DNA of 8,031 nucleotides from Oopsacas minuta (Eukaryota; Animalia; Porifera), in contig JAKMXF010000180.1 in NCBI GenBank assembly GCA_024704765.1, positions 1-8,031 of the forward strand, written 5' to 3'. The notes under the pieces were generated by a model. The model was given only the letters and a program-made list of their open reading frames with translations. It was not told where the DNA came from and ran no database searches. Each line of letters opens with the position of its first letter. Positions within the stretch are counted from its first letter, which is position 1. Positions 1,676 through 7,355 of this stretch are shown here, piece by piece. The position numbers and the translations under genes were made by a program.

Positions 1676-1946
1676 CTGTATACCCTCGCTAATCCGAACA
1701 GGGCCTAGAGCTTATACAATATTTGGAAAATTATTTAAAACGGAAAAACATAGCCGATTTATATCCAGTTCTACTACAGATCAATATCTAATACTATATT
1801 ACGCATGTCGGCCCCCATTACATCGTTTAGACAACTTTCGAAAGAGTCCTCCCAGATTCTATAGTATTGTTTCAATGCATTTCGCTAATCTGAAAGTATT
1901 ATTTTGCAATCGGAAGAGTGGTGTTCGGATTAGTGGGAGTATACTG
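1676..1946. mobile_element. Tc1/mariner (pogo-like) MITE, 271 bp
   Basis: 25-bp TIRs at 1676-1700 (ctgtataccctcgctaatccgaaca) and 1922-1946 (reverse complement cagtatactcccactaatccgaaca), 21/25 identical, with TA on both sides (1674-1675, 1947-1948). Confidence 0.8.
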
Positions 1947-2087
1947 TAGCCCGTTGATTGGACTGAAATGAATGATCACCACGGCTACTATTGACTATTG
2001 AGTAAATACTTGCCAAAAATATCATGTTAGCTATCACACAACTAATCTATGGACATTATTCAGAACAGAAAGTACGAAACTATAGTA

Positions 2088-2917
2088 TTATAATTTAGTT
2101 TGTATAGGTGCTGGAGTACAATTGATACCAGTTTCATTGTAACTCTTACTTTTGCAAGCTAGACTCCCATCACTTGCTTTGGATAGACAGATAAAACAAA
2201 AGTCTTTCTCGCAACTACAACAAGTCATTGTATTGCATTTACTTGTGTGTTCAATGAGAGTATGGCAATCTTTTCTGGGACAAGCTCTCCAAAGTGGAAT
2301 AGAAACAATCTTTCCGTTATAATCTTTAAAATCCTTTCTAGGAGAATTAATTAAAACTTCTATCTCCTCTCTCATGCAATTCACATTCCCACAAACTTTA
2401 TCACTGTTTGAATTATTCCAATCTCTCATACAATACCAGCAAAATGAGTAATAATTATTTAGTTTTCGAGGACAAATTAAGCAAAATACTTTAGGATTAT
2501 CTTTTCTTTCTCTTTGACAAAGAGTCTTGCACTGAGGGCATTGTTGGATGTCCTGGCTCTCATAGAAGTTTGTAGTTATAGCTGTTGTGAGAAATTGTTC
2601 TTCTTCTAGACTCGGTAATCCAAATTTGATTACATCCTGCATTGAAATTATTTTATCACAACCTGTGCAACTAATCTCAAACTTCATGTTACTGATATCT
2701 CCCCAAGCCTTACCCAGAATATCATCTGGGCATATGAAATGACCACATTTCATTCTCAGGCCAGAGGAATGAAAACATGTATTGCAAGTACCACTGGGAT
2801 GGGAAAATGAAACAGTCCGTTTTTCGTCTCTAAATTCATCAAACATCAATTCACACCCTCTAGCCTCAGTAAAAGAGACATTTTTCTGTTCAAAAGGGTT
2901 AACATCTGCCATAGTTT
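2088..2917 (-). CDS. RBR-family (RING1-IBR-RING2) E3 ubiquitin ligase, terminal coding exon (first in-exon ATG at 2912)
   Basis: 274-aa ORF. RING1-like C43/C46/C56-H58/C61/C82/C85; IBR C125/C128/C144/C147/C158/C161/C174; RING2 RACPRKDC...IEHTSKCNTMTCCSCEKDFCFICL matching the RBR IEKxxGCNHMxC...FCxxC pattern, with putative catalytic C226. Acceptor ttttctgattag| at 2918 and branch-like CTAAC at 2945-2941. Confidence 0.92.
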
Positions 2918-3002
2918 CTAATCAGAAAATACAATTACTAGTTAGAACTTTAAAGGAAACCTCAATTAAATAACCCTTTTGGTGTACCAATAGACTATTT
3001 TA

Positions 3003-3030
3003 CAGGATTGCCGTGGGAACAGAATTTCTA
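3003..3030 (+). mobile_element. hAT-like left terminal inverted repeat remnant
   Basis: caggattgccgtggg (3003-3017) matches the reverse complement of 4812-4826 (cagggttaccgtggg) at 13/15. CAGGG-type start is common in hAT TIRs. Confidence 0.4.
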
Positions 3031-3244
3031 CTCATTAACATGATCCACCTATATGCCAATGCAAAAAATTTCGGGACATATTTATTGCTGTTTTATGATA
3101 ATGAAGTATGGTCAAGCAATTACTGAAATATAAAATATTACTAGAAATTAGAGACTCGCTCTTCTTGAGTGCATAAGGCTATCAAGTAGGTACACTGATT
3201 CAGAATTTCGCACTTTTAAGTCTGTCATGAGTAAACTTATTGTA

Positions 3245-3560
3245 GTTTTATGAAAATGAATTATTCACATTGCGGAAATTTCAAAATATAGATAGAGAAT
3301 TGATTTTAATGGGTACATAAGGGTAAACACATGTATGTTGAATCCGAAAATGATATTAACCACCAAATATTATGAATACTTGTTGTACTGCTAATCGAGT
3401 ATACTTACTGATTCGGTTTAATATTTCAAGTTTGCTATATGTAACTTAGCGTTGGTTTTATGAATATAAATAAGGATAAATAGTTGAAATTTCAAAATAT
3501 CCATACTAGTAACTAGTTTTCAACGGGTACATAGGGTACACAAGTATTTTATTTCGAATT
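3245..3560. repeat. Diverged direct repeat, about 211 bp period (transposon-internal type)
   Basis: gaaatttcaaaatat at 3275-3289 and 3486-3500; gggtacata(a)gggta at 3311 and 3525; gttttatgaa precedes both copies. Confidence 0.65.
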
Positions 3561-3629
3561 TCGTAATTTCAAGGTTTCATATGTATACATATTTGCGAAT
3601 TAATAACATTTGTAATAATAGACTTTTGC

Positions 3630-3719
3630 TTAATTGGAGGCACAAAGTTCCGAGCGTAAGCGGAAACGAAGTGTTTGCAATCCGCGTAGCGCTAGCAAGC
3701 GAAGTGCGCTACTTGCTAA
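3630..3719 (+). mobile_element. Helitron-like 3' terminus (hairpins followed by CTRR|T)
   Basis: GC-rich hairpins gttcc-gagcgtaagc-ggaaac and gtagcgc...gcgctac / tagcaag...cttgcta around a gcgaag motif, ending CTAA|T at 3716-3720. Confidence 0.5.
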
Positions 3720-3882
3720 TAATAATATGTATGAAGCAAATTTAGTAATATCATAGAAAAAATTACAAAGGATTTGTCTGACCGTATTATGTGTAATAAC
3801 CTCAACAGTATGAAAAAATTTGAACATAAAACACAAGTTACGAGTATATATAAAACATTGATATAATTATAATGTAACATAG

Positions 3883-4083
3883 TCAGTAATATTTGTTACC
3901 ACCTGGTAGTCTAACCACCATAACAATACTTGCGCCACCACCTATTCCATAGTCTTCAAAGGTCATCACTTCTCCATCGCGAGAATTCTCTAGATCTTTA
4001 GAACCATACAGCAAACGTTGTTTGTCTACATCAATCCCGGTTGCTACTTTCACTTTCACTTTCAGTTCTGATATTTTTAAATT
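3883..4083 (-). CDS. Ubiquitin-like domain exon (NLKISELKVKVKVATGIDVDKQRLLYGSKDLENSRDGEVMTFEDYGIGGGASIVMVVRLPGG-NKYY*)
   Basis: Manual translation aligns to ubiquitin residues ~20-76 (GIxxDxQRLxYxxKxLE, TxxDYxI, VxRLxGG). Acceptor ttctctcgtctag| at 4084, phase 0. Stop TGA at 3885-3883 if unspliced. Absent from the ORF track because no start codon precedes it. Confidence 0.82.
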   Translation of the reverse strand, partial: NLKISELKVKVKVATGIDVDKQRLLYGSKDLENSRDGEVMTFEDYGIGGGASIVMVVRLPGGNKYY

Positions 4084-4172
4084 CTAGACGAGAGAACACA
4101 TTATTAATTATAGGTATTTAAAGCGATTTGGAGCAAAAACACATACAAATACATTATTACAGGAATAAAATA

Positions 4173-4214
4173 ATGCTCCATTTTATTAACGCGAATTGGA
4201 GCATATCGCGTTAA
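4173..4214. other. Two interleaved perfect inverted repeats (pseudoknot topology)
   Basis: atgctcca (4173-4180) pairs with tggagcat (4197-4204); ttaacgcga (4186-4194) pairs with tcgcgttaa (4206-4214). Confidence 0.85.
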
Positions 4215-4368
4215 AAAAGTAGGGCTGAATTTGTAAAATGATGTATGAAATAAGCTAGAAATTTTCTCGATTCTCTCTTTTCATACAGGGGCATTCAAAT
4301 AGTAACTAATCACTCCCAAAGTTTATAGTATGCAGACAATTGAATGCCTCATTATTATTATATTTTAG

Positions 4369-4527
4369 AGACCAATTTTTCTACTCAAGAGAGGTTCTTC
4401 CAGATGTCTGTGTGTCAGACTTTCGTACAGAGGAGGTTCTCTATCGCATATTTTTCGATGCCTTAGGTCCAGTAGCTCAGATACCTGCACCAAACAGAGA
4501 TGTAGCAAGCAGATTTCAATTGATCAG
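4369..4527 (+). CDS. Putative 159-nt symmetric (phase 2-2) internal exon of an unidentified gene
   Basis: Acceptor ttattattatattttag| at 4368, donor CAG|GTTAAC at 4528, GC higher than flanks, open frame DQFFYSREVLPDVCVSDFRTEEVLYRIFFDALGPVAQIPAPNRDVASRFQLI. A second plus-strand frame is also open. Confidence 0.35.
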
Positions 4528-4533
4528 GTTAAC

Positions 4534-4614
4534 CTTTACAAAATATATGGAGCCACCAAAGTTGGTCCGGTTGACTAATACTATTTGTATTGGCAGTGAA
4601 AATGGATTTTCCAT
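4534..4614 (-). CDS. Weak candidate first exon of the Ubl-RBR gene (MENPFSLPIQIVLVNRTNFGGSIYFVK)
   Basis: ATG at 4614-4612 and phase-0 donor AAG|GTTAAC at 4533 fit the phase-0 acceptor at 4084. IQIVLVN-turn-SIYFV loosely resembles the ubiquitin beta1-beta2 hairpin, but the start overlaps repeat DNA. Confidence 0.2.
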
Positions 4615-4826
4615 CGGTTTCCAATAGATATCCCATAGAGGAATTCCCATAGAAAGAAAATAATTCCCATAACGATTAACCTTGAAAAAACGAATAAATT
4701 CATCTCAAGAGAATGCACATGGCTTAGTACAGAGAAAACAGAAAAATGGTTTTCCCATATGGAAATTCTCATAGCAAGAAAATGATTTCCATTCCCATGG
4801 GAATTCCCATACCCACGGTAACCCTG
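4598..4826. mobile_element. hAT-like element right end or MITE with repeated ATTCCCAT subterminal motifs
   Basis: aattcccata at 4642 and 4662, further copies at 4752, 4791 and 4803; perfect 14-bp palindrome attcccatgggaat at 4791-4804; terminus cccacggtaaccctg at 4812-4826. No 8-bp TSD found. Confidence 0.6.
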
Positions 4827-4995
4827 GGATTTACCTGCAGCTTTCGTTTCTCTATATGTATTGTCTTCGACTTTCCCTCTAAACCAGAAATATAGATATT
4901 TTCCATTCTTCGAGAAGTGAAAATCTACATAAAAGACATAATGGAGAAATACCCATTATCTGTTAATTTTAGTAAAAATTCATGGTTATTAATGA

Positions 4996-5022
4996 CTAGC
5001 TTGCTTCGCTTGCTATGTCGCT
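4996..5022 (-). mobile_element. Helitron-like 3' terminus
   Basis: Minus strand reads gcgacatagcaagcgaagcaagCTAG|T and shares the exact 12-mer tagcaagcgaag with the end at 3693-3704. Confidence 0.45.
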
Positions 5023-5075
5023 GCCGATACCCCTGGTATAACCCAGTATTAAATAGCTAAATTTCATGATACTTT

Positions 5076-5600
5076 TAGTCCCTTAGCGACGGGATATACT
5101 CAGCACTACGTGCCTCGAGTTGAGATATTGAAGAAATTTCAATTTTTATTATCCATGGCCCATCTACATGATATTTACTTGGTCTTGAGTTGCTATATGG
5201 CTTTTGATCAGTATCCTGGGCACATCGTGCAAGGAGTATTATGAAATTCCCAAAATTTCTGAATTTAAACAATTCATGAATTTTTCGAATCGTCTTAATG
5301 ACGTGATACTCTCATGATGAATTAGCTTTTGGTGAAAATGACGTCAGGACATTTGGCACATTGAGGGTACCTGCGATTCAAATTTCAAAATACTATCATG
5401 TATATTGGCTGAGCAGTGGTTAATAATGTGATTTTTTGAAAATCCAAAAAGGTAACAATGACGTGATAATTTCGTCATAGGTGTGAACTTTGGCCCAAGA
5501 CTCGAAAGTGTCCGAGCCAGGCCCAAAATACCCCTGTACGCCAAAAATCACCCCTTGGGGTCTTCCAATTTCTTCAATTAATTCTTGATAAAATATTGCA
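5076..5600. repeat. Degenerate interspersed-repeat block with recurrent ATGACGT(G/C)A motifs, possibly Helitron/Helentron-related
   Basis: atgacgtgat at 5298 and 5458, atgacgtca at 5338, hairpin atgacg/cgtcat at 5458-5478, and a tttt|agtccc...gggatatact start. Boundaries uncertain. Confidence 0.35.
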
Positions 5601-6179
5601 ACACTATATTACGCACAGATGGCACATGGCGAGATCGGTTGAAAGATTATATGACTATAGCAGAAAGTAGGACAATAGCTTGCTATCATTTGTTGTTTAT
5701 GATATAGTTATGTTAAAATTGTTTGAAATCATCATAAAAACTGAGGTTACATCACTTTGGTGCCAGGTGCCAAGTGTGGCAGGATTTTTCAATACTTATG
5801 GCCAGGCAGGGTACATACAGATTAGTACTATAGATGTATTAGTTTTTGTTGCAGTACATTTTGCTAATTACATGAGTAAATTTACATTCTTGACTGTACA
5901 GTAGAAGTCTTTACCACTACCTATGCATGGTAAAATGCATTAAGGGGGTGGAAAGATAAAAACATGTCCAGCCTACAGACTGGTAGTGCAGTTTAGGGTT
6001 ATGTATTTTTGTTCTTTCAGGGGGGCACGCTCCCCTACCCTCAGTATAAATGCGGTAATGCACCGGATCCGACTGGATCCTGGATCTGATAAATATTTCG
6101 GGATATTCAATATTTTCGTCCTCTAATGTACTTCATATTCTATCTTCAAATCCTATGGATAAAATTCCGAATAATTATC

Positions 6180-6470
6180 CTACAATTACCCCTTGTATAA
6201 CTTCTGAAACGAAATCTCTAACATCAATTTAAATATGTGTAAAAAGGTGTGAAAATATGATAATTGATGTAGATATAAATTTGAAAATTTGAATTTTGGA
6301 ACCTACATACTCGATTACCCCTAACTAGCAGTAAAAACGAAATCTCTGGCATGATTTTGAATATTATGCAAAAAGGTGTGAAAATATGATTATTCATATG
6401 ATAAATCTGTGAATTTGTAACTTTCAGCTGAAAATCTCAAATTCGGACTCTACGCACTCAATTACCCCTG
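6180..6470. repeat. Diverged tandem repeat, about 129-147 bp unit, about 2.3 copies
   Basis: aaaaaggtgtgaaaatatgat exact at 6241 and 6370; aaacgaaatctct at 6207 and 6335; attacccct at 6185, 6314 and 6461. Confidence 0.8.
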
Positions 6471-6544
6471 ACAACATTTTGTCAAACAGGTGCAATGTCT
6501 CACTTTTGGTGCGGGAATTGGTTGAAATATAGTGGTAGAATTTT

Positions 6545-6574
6545 AGTGTTCCTTTTCGTTACGAACGTAACACT
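6545..6574. repeat. Imperfect hairpin following TTTT, possible Helentron/DINE-type terminus
   Basis: agtgtt...ttcgt-t-acgaa...aacact arms, plus an inner gttacg/cgtaac pair. Confidence 0.4.
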
Positions 6575-7024
6575 TCGGCCGTAATCGGTTAAACGCCAGG
6601 CATTGCAATGAAATCTGAAGAGTAATTAGGGTATACGTATATCCAAATATTTAAAATAATTACCTGAATTGTAATCGAAAATTCTAAGGAGATCTTAATC
6701 TGTAAAATGGGACTATTAAGGTAAGTAATAGTGCATATAAACCTCTTAAATAGCTTATAGAATTACTATGAAATATGAGACAGTTGCTTATTCACGAGAT
6801 TCATAGAAACTGCTAATTATAAATTCATATTCACTTCTATTCCCCATGAAATGTATAAGGTTATTGAAAAATGTTGCTCGAATCTTTCCTGTATAACAAT
6901 GGTTTCCAACCTCACACGATGAAACATATTGTGAGTTCAAAAGTATATAATGAATGTGCATGGTGTATATTATTCAAAATATTCAATAATCTCACTTGTA
7001 AGGGGTCGCGAATTTGTTGGAAAA

Positions 7025-7355
7025 TTTAAGTGGATCGCCGAACATTCGTTTGGGTATCACTGCTGTACAAGAATAAAAATTTTGCACAATTGGAACTATT
7101 GAGTAATTTTTTGAATCCTAATTGAACTAAGTTAGAGCCTATATCATATGATAATATTACAACAATTGGTAAACCCTCAAATCTGATAGGTCAATACATT
7201 TTGACACCTATCTCAAAGGGATTTTGAGATATCGCTTAGATCTTATAACATGTTCCTAGATTTATCACATTCCACAAATTTCAAGTTTGTAGCTCTTACC
7301 AGTCCTCAATCAATTCCGGACAAAAAACAAAAACATAGACGAAATATATAATAGA
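7025..7355 (-). mobile_element. Non-autonomous Helitron-like element, about 330 bp
   Basis: Minus-strand 5' end A|TCTATTATATA at 7356/7355; subterminal hairpin ccgaac-attc-gtttgg at 7038-7053; the CTRR 3' end is decayed. Confidence 0.55.

Follow-up and report, generated by a model that had tools for sequence, protein, structure and literature searches.

Gene Organization of the Locus

The window, i.e., the whole stretch of DNA analyzed here, is the 8,031-base contig JAKMXF010000180.1 of the glass sponge Oopsacas minuta. It contains a gene for a ubiquitin-like protein (Ubl) and a gene for an RBR E3 ligase, both on the minus strand and separated by the Ubl stop codon and 970 bases. In the NCBI annotation the two are fused into one model, LOD99_11374 (P0001, 399 aa), with exons 7045-6998, 6711-6664, 4924-4835, 4083-3903, and 2917-2088. 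The last two are the Ubl exon (4083-3903) and one large RBR exon (2917-2088), joined from 3903 to 2917 at an RLP/E junction. The features of the locus are as follows (a slash marks a splice site; X2 is an RNA-like sequencing run described below):

6664..6711, minus strand: upstream exon of the Ubl transcript, an exon of P0001; 5' UTR or N-terminal extension of the NCBI model
4835..4924, minus strand: Ubl exon 1, with the ATG at 4906-4904; codes MENIYISGLEGKSKTIHIEKRKLQ; donor CAG/GTAAAT
3883..4083, minus strand: Ubl exon 2, the last two thirds of the Ubl domain, ending RLPGG-NKYY-stop; Pfam PF00240, E 4.8e-9
3898..3903, minus strand: Gly-Gly codons GGT GGT; first GT at 3902/3901, second GT at 3899/3898
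3883..3897, minus strand: tail NKYY and TGA stop of the read-through (free Ubl) product, from the sequence in the Ubl frame
2918..3902, minus strand: Ubl-RBR interval, a 985-base facultative intron of a conjoined transcript (a joint and an unspliced contig in X2)
2922..2924, minus strand: in-frame TGA, 12 bases (start to start) before the RBR ATG
2918..2919, minus strand: acceptor AG, tattttctgattAG/AAACT ATG, 5 bases 5' of the RBR start codon
2088..2912, minus strand: RBR E3 ligase ORF, 274 aa in a single exon, with its own ATG (2912-2910) and stop (2090-2088)

In the searches, the two Ubl exons of the window were used as separate queries, and the spliced forms were represented by the proteins P0001 and P0047, the latter being a paralogous Ubl. 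A homolog of Ubl exon 1 is present at the paralogous loci (tblastn), and a word search with Ubl exon 2 gave a single match. No contigs encoding the 274-aa RBR ORF of the window were found, and the P0047 query returned the NCBI contig only.

The two upstream exons (6998-7045 and 6664-6711, minus strand) give the NCBI model 38 extra N-terminal residues. The paralogous Ubl genes begin at the Met of MENIY or MDNIY, and the bin with the first NCBI exon (6998-7045) has a depth of just 7.4 in the RNA-like run; the 38-residue extension is probably 5' UTR.

The Gly-Gly Codons and the Splice

The end of the Ubl exon is as the first-pass annotation of this DNA had described it: the minus strand from 3906 to 3883 reads CCA GGT GGT AAC AAA TAT TAC TGA, in frame with the Ubl exon, and its read-through product ends P-G-G-N-K-Y-Y-stop in the Ubl frame. 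That annotation had further proposed that splicing at either GT of the Gly codons destroys the Gly-Gly pair and makes the ligase. A splice from either GT to the AG at 2919/2918 is indeed in frame, because the downstream exon begins AA ACT ATG; both donors are phase 1 and would give RLP-E-TMADV and RLPG-E-TMADV, respectively. An RNA joint was seen for the first GT only, and none from the second GT (3899/3898) occurs among the X2 joints listed. While a GT within a GGT codon is trivial by itself, the one in the first Gly codon is more than a chance occurrence, because an X2 contig joins 3903 to 2917 with GT..AG ends.

The absence of AATAAA after the read-through stop, also noted in the first-pass annotation, was confirmed: the nearest site on the minus strand is at 3553-3548, ~330 bases downstream. 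As no AATAAA was found close to the 3' end of either gene in the window, its absence past the Ubl stop is uninformative. One X2 contig stops at 2050, 38 bases past the RBR stop codon, where it runs into Illumina adapter sequence; AATAAT lies ~10-15 bases upstream of 2050, and AATAAA is absent there. This hints at a very short 3' UTR of the RBR gene.

Transcripts of the Locus

Contigs from four public runs of one sample and one study were aligned on positions 1800-7200. Three of the runs (X1, X3, and X4) are DNA-like, and X2 is the single RNA-like run. In X2, exon bins have depths in the thousands, and the contigs of intron 1 (4274-4482 and 4453-4864) have depths of ~20-23. The X2 contig ending at 6664 runs on with 12 letters that are the reverse complement of the exon start at 4924, so that the GT..AG splice from 6664 to 4924 is seen in RNA. 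In another X2 contig, 3903 is followed directly by 2917; the 985 bases left out have GT..AG ends on the gene strand (CT..AC on the plus strand). This joint is absent from the DNA-like runs X1, X3, and X4, and is the same junction as in P0001.

The same run contains a single 951-base contig spanning 2920-3870, the whole Ubl-RBR interval, in unspliced form. The first-pass proposal had named the existence of spliced transcripts alone as an outcome that would speak against it, and this contig shows that unspliced RNA exists as well. In X2 the unspliced interval contig has a depth of 354, ~17 times that of the intron-1 contigs, and the junction contig has a depth of 235. Past the donor, the depth is 6,978 at 3892, where paralogous transcripts may raise it, and ~1,900-2,200 at 3879 and 3861. 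The RBR exon has a depth of 5,180 at its 5' edge (2903), well above both visible inflows (354 + 235). Since contig depth cannot rank parts of a gene and may be raised by paralogs, conclusions are limited to two: spliced and unspliced RNA forms both exist, and the spliced form is not obviously dominant among the X2 contigs.

Conservation of the Ubl End in Paralogous Loci

Nine loci from the O. minuta assembly and four ENA assemblies were compared (L001-L005 and L008-L011, L011 re-covering the L001 region). Together with the window they provide 18 copies of Ubl exon 2 and 17 RBR starts. L006, a 942-base Logan contig of a relative with 108 non-Ubl bases before the ATG, was left out of the comparison.

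The terminal motif R-L/V-x-G-G, mostly RLPGG, is kept in 16 of the 18 Ubl copies. The Gly pair is encoded by GGT GGT in eight copies, by GGG GGA in two, and once each by GGA GGT, GGG GGT, GGT GGG, GGC GGT, GGC GGA, and GGC GGC; this variety of synonymous codons indicates that Gly-Gly is kept as protein. In four of the 16 Gly-Gly copies neither Gly codon contains a GT, so that these copies cannot splice like the window. A stop codon follows 1-7 codons past the Gly-Gly position (median 4) in all 17 non-decayed copies, window included; TAA, TGA, and TAG all occur, and their positions differ. In the other two frames from the same point the median distance is 10.5 and the maximum 67 codons (one-sided Mann-Whitney p 8.5e-5, with related copies treated as independent). 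The first-pass annotation had suggested that conservation of the Gly-Gly, short tail, and stop be checked in paralogs and had cautioned that the Gly-Gly might be vestigial. The arrangement is conserved, so that the sequence after Gly-Gly does not represent unconstrained intron, and its retention in 16 of 18 copies through synonymous codons, with the tail kept short, argues against a vestige.

Two Ubl copies are decaying (L008 16286 and L005 13841). One of them ends RLPGD-T-stop, with Asp in place of the last Gly; in the other the second Gly is gone, the tail is 28 codons long, and no RBR gene lies behind it.

GGT is found at the second Gly codon in 11 of 16 cases and at the first in 9 of 17, vs. 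28% of 350 other Gly codons in these genes. This excess (binomial p 8e-4 and 0.026, respectively) was calculated with related copies treated as independent, and much of it may reflect shared ancestry within two clades. The GGT excess and the conserved acceptor context are compatible with selection for the splice in some members of the family. The closest paralog, L001, has the same CCA GGT GGT AAC, the conserved TTCTGATTA before the ATG, and a phase-1 AG. The interval can be aligned with that of L001 only beside the two genes and in a patch of ~35 bases.

This patch (window 3770-3803, minus strand; L001 ~8860-8895) lies 80-110 bases past the Ubl stop and is, apart from the gene edges, the sole part of the interval conserved relative to L001. 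It is a candidate signal for 3'-end processing in the Ubl gene.

Conservation of the RBR Start and Annotation of Other Pairs

The RBR exon has 46 close glass-sponge relatives with 44-100% identity, nearly all of them ORFs of 271-292 aa starting at Met. An own ATG at the homologous place (MAD.., MAE.., MSG.., or MCA..) was found in 17 of 17 RBR copies, with an in-frame stop 3-63 bases upstream of it in each. The proposal that the splice makes the ligase is thus not supported, as the ligase does not need it. A phase-1 AG between the upstream stop and codon 4 is lacking in four of the 17 copies, and the acceptor positions differ between copies; in the glass-sponge paralogs, neither is the acceptor phase conserved nor is the donor GT always present (missing from 4 of 16 copies). 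The phase-1 AG of the other 13 of 17 RBR copies was considered as support for the splice and rejected, being common enough by chance.

Four other O. minuta pairs are annotated by NCBI as separate genes, with Ubl proteins of 91, 89, 87, and 87 aa and RBR proteins of 274, 279, 274, and 249 aa; the fused annotation is limited to the pair in the window. In the L008 pair, with GGC GGC and no phase-1 AG, such a splice is impossible.

Ubl and RBR Proteins and the Neighboring E2 Genes

The paralogous Ubl P0047 (91 aa) is 77% identical to exon 2 of the window. It aligns with ubiquitin over residues 3-76, with RLPGG on RLRGG and Gly-Gly on G75-G76. An AlphaFold model based on an 18-row alignment is a beta-grasp fold with a pLDDT of 87.6 and a low-confidence C-terminal tail; a single-sequence model (pLDDT 38.7) was discarded. 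The best Foldseek matches in PDB are ubiquitin chains (~30% identity, TM by target up to 0.91). Equivalents of L8, I44, V70, R72, and L73 are kept, and the Lys aligned with K48 is invariant. By its predicted beta-grasp fold and its terminal Gly-Gly with a short tail, the Ubl of the window qualifies as a putative type I Ubl, which would be expected to undergo conjugation.

The RBR exon matches Pfam PF01485 (IBR, E 5.2e-8) in two stretches, and only IBR families were matched. Residues 211-262 align with the RING2 structure of HHARI (1wd2), the Cys in KCNTMTC standing opposite CNHMVC. The protein thus appears to have IBR and RING2 (Rcat) domains with a predicted catalytic Cys. For RING1, no Pfam RING model matched; by eye, the pattern C-x2-C ... 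C-x-H-x2-C ... C-x2-C can be recognized, one ligand short.

A gene for a UBE2J-like E2 adjoins the cassette in L001, L004, L005, L008 (twice), and L009 (twice). None was found in the window, which stops 2 kb past the RBR gene. The same-strand Ubl/RBR/E2 cassettes are located at L008 8590-13292 and 15671-20825, L009 5057-7040 and 13367-15061, L001 3275-4003, L004 4620-5402, and L005 18073-20235. Some of the E2 genes are long (648-720 aa), and TRAF, NHL, and ankyrin genes are found close by.

Relatives in Other Animals and Known Systems

With the RBR exon as query, an exhaustive profile search gave 577 matches at E <= 0.001, 254 of them at E <= 1e-10. A Ubl profile built from the glass-sponge alignment was run on the non-glass-sponge representatives among the matches listed, and an N-terminal Ubl was found in 36 of these. 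In all 36 the ORF stays open beyond the Ubl and into the RBR, adding 171-342 residues (median 261.5), and in 33 the Ubl ends in R-x-x-G-G (once in Q-x-x-G-G): RLPGG in 13, RLLGG in four, RLKGG in three, and RLRGG in three. Named fused members include proteins of the bivalves Ruditapes philippinarum (XP_060565936.1) and Mercenaria mercenaria (XP_045163613.2), and a fused ORF of 346-347 aa is carried by several short Logan contigs. The first-pass annotation had considered Pro at the position of R74 a possible hindrance to recognition; with RLPGG in 13 of the 33 fused relatives, it is a hallmark of the family rather than a defect.

The glass-sponge genes share with this unnamed animal family a homologous RBR (E 1e-20 to 1e-37) and a Ubl ending in R-x-x-G-G, most often RLPGG. 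In the animal single-chain proteins, however, the chain passes the Gly-Gly via a linker to the RBR, whereas in glass sponges a stop follows after 1-7 codons; in terms of sequence, the glass-sponge genes are a split form of a Ubl-GlyGly-RBR family. As 33 of the 36 relatives have Gly-Gly at the joint of Ubl and RBR, Gly-Gly is the conserved junction of the family. Its retention at an internal junction would be expected of a chain that is cleaved at this point, in the manner of ubiquitin-ribosomal fusions, and cleavage at Gly-Gly is probably the step shared by the family. The spliced isoform of the window deletes Gly-Gly and therefore is not equivalent to the fused relatives.

Several known systems resemble the locus in part. 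Short C-terminal tails are carried by NEDD8, SUMO1-3, ISG15, and the last unit of polyubiquitin, and the Ubl of the window family, with its beta-grasp fold, Gly-Gly at G75-G76, and tail of 1-7 residues, is like these precursors. It differs from them in Pro for Arg74, a five-residue insertion before the last helix, ~30% identity to ubiquitin, multiple copies, and pairing with an own RBR gene (one decayed copy is without RBR). As in UBA52, RPS27A, and FAU/FUBI-S30, a Gly-Gly-ended Ubl is encoded directly 5' of a partner protein, although the partner is an E3 ligase and not a ribosomal protein, and a stop and 970 bases intervene in the window. By analogy, this suggests that, in the fused relatives at least, Ubl and RBR are co-produced and cut at Gly-Gly.

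Like Parkin and HOIL-1L, the spliced isoform carries its Ubl N-terminal to RING1-IBR-RING2 (RING1 by eye only), and neighbors in the protein atlas include the parkin and RBCK1 clusters. Unlike these proteins, it has no RING0/UPD and no NZF (IBR only in the Pfam scan), and the tethered form is a minor isoform. The Ubl domains of Parkin and HOIL-1L are not known to keep a terminal Gly-Gly. With fusion found only as a spliced isoform, no RING0/UPD, and an own RBR ATG in all copies, the locus is not of the Parkin type. Finally, the human NEDD8-MDP1 is a readthrough transcript of neighboring genes; as in such conjoined transcripts, the donor of an upstream Ubl gene is here spliced onto an exon of its same-strand downstream neighbor, so that a chimeric ORF exists alongside the separate products.

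Interpretation

The genes of the window belong to a cassette expanded in glass sponges, consisting of a Ubl, an RBR E3, and often a UBE2J-like E2. We consider the locus to comprise two adjacent genes, one for a tail-trimmed Ubl precursor and one for an RBR translated from its own ATG, with an occasional minor conjoined transcript (probability about 0.6). Gene 1 (4924-4835 and 4083-3883) would encode the precursor of a Ubl modifier ending in RLPGG, NKYY, and a stop. By analogy with the NEDD8, SUMO, and ISG15 precursors, a protease would trim the tail, exposing Gly-Gly for activation and conjugation, the latter most likely via the neighboring RBR and E2. Gene 2 (2912-2088) would give an RBR ligase translated from its own ATG, from RNA that either starts near the exon edge or is gene 1 RNA running on. 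The weak donor in the first Gly codon (CAG/GTGGTA) would sometimes pair with the AG that lies 5 bases 5' of the RBR ATG, yielding an in-frame Ubl-RBR chimera devoid of Gly-Gly. Counted from the Met of MENIY, this chimera would have 361 residues and a mass of ~41 kDa. The comparison of loci favors the free Ubl as the conserved product, and the chimera, real as an RNA, does not appear to be one. The first-pass suggestion that one locus encodes both a modifier and a ligase is thus retained in part: both RNA forms exist and the Gly-Gly, tail, and stop are conserved, but the ligase is independent of the splice, and the locus does not appear to be built as a switch.

A regulated donor in the Gly codon that decides whether the Ubl is made free and conjugatable or is tethered to the RBR as a non-cleavable regulatory domain (cf. 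Parkin) seems unlikely. The co-occurrence of spliced and unspliced forms in X2 agrees with such a choice, as does the enrichment of GGT at the Gly codons, even though a quarter of the Gly-Gly copies (4 of 16) have no GT there. NCBI adopted the in-frame splice in its model, but ~1/3 of such splices would be in frame by chance, and the junction contig is small compared with the unspliced depth. L001 keeps the donor CCA GGT GGT AAC, the acceptor context, and the phase-1 AG, whereas a phase-1 acceptor is missing from four RBR copies and the place of the acceptor varies across the family; Parkin's RING0, moreover, is absent (only IBR families in the Pfam scan). Restricting regulated Gly-codon splicing to a subset of glass-sponge cassettes that includes the window, with either a modifier and a separate ligase or an uncleavable tethered ligase as the outcome, gives a version that we find distinctly unlikely. 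We know of no ubiquitin-like system for which a splice-controlled choice between substrate and regulatory domain has been described. The splice is real, yet no conserved design is apparent in it.

The Ubl and RBR genes could instead be co-transcribed in an operon-like manner, the AG before the RBR ATG being mainly an acceptor for trans-splicing of a spliced leader and the cis splice a by-product of the exposed acceptor meeting a weak upstream donor. A trans-spliced leader of ~37 bases was reported for the glass sponge Aphrocallistes vastus, but on 4% of long reads only (PMC10282587), and trans-splicing and operons go unmentioned in the O. minuta genome paper. The continuous contig across the interval in X2 and the acceptor-like TTAG immediately 5' of the ATG in several copies fit co-transcription, and so does the depth at the RBR 5' edge (5,180 at 2903), far above the entering paths (354 + 235), weak as this point is for contigs. 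No loose end at 2917 occurs among the X2 ends listed, however, and no leader was seen, and we judge this scenario quite improbable. Highly improbable, in our opinion, is that the fusion is the sole real product, with the interval an ordinary intron, the unspliced RNA pre-mRNA, and the Gly-Gly, tail, and stop a relic. The NCBI model of the locus is a fusion, and the ends of the junction are canonical GT..AG, the acceptor being pyrimidine-rich. Against this, Gly-Gly is kept through synonymous changes, the tail is kept short, the RBR ATG is found in all copies, the interval contig is ~17 times deeper than the intron-1 contigs of the same run, and the four other O. minuta pairs are annotated as separate, the L008 pair being unable to form the splice.

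A full-text literature search yielded no description of the Ubl/RBR family. New here are a splice within a Gly codon that RNA confirms, figures for how well Gly-Gly, tail, and stop are conserved, and the conserved start codon of the RBR gene. Should the Ubl be conjugated, glass sponges would possess a private ubiquitin-like system in dozens of copies, made up of an RLPGG modifier, an RBR E3 of its own, and in many cases a UBE2J-like E2. The existence of fused relatives in molluscs and other animals suggests that the family is old and that its ligase is co-encoded with the modifier it probably uses. Since Gly-Gly codons can serve as a splice donor, annotation can silently merge modifier and ligase genes into a 'Parkin-like' fusion.

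Repeats and Other Sequence Elements

The segments 5239-5600 and 5963-6686 reach depths of up to ~23,000 in the DNA-like runs, vs. ~70 in unique sequence. Together with the many internal joints, such depths point to repeats of high copy number or fragments of transposons. In the window, no Rfam match exceeded the threshold, and neither an SL RNA nor any other RNA gene was found; a weak sub-threshold match to snR107 (E 0.53) lies within 5239-5600. Matches from a scan for sigma-70 promoters and terminators were at chance level, and such signals are irrelevant for a eukaryote.

A GC-rich element of ~45 bases, with the core AGCAAGCGAAGYG and partly palindromic flanks, recurs in this AT-rich setting at the following positions:

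window, 3640-3720, plus strand: in the Ubl-RBR interval, antisense to the genes
window, 5002-5014, minus strand: ~100 bases upstream of the Ubl ATG, in sense orientation
other loci: L003 6432-6444 and 9737-9749; L006 43-55; L001 7096-7108

Outside the window, it is found 55-330 bases upstream of the RBR ORFs of three relatives and in an L001 intron. The chance expectation is ~0.01 matches per window. The element may belong to promoters or represent a small mobile repeat.
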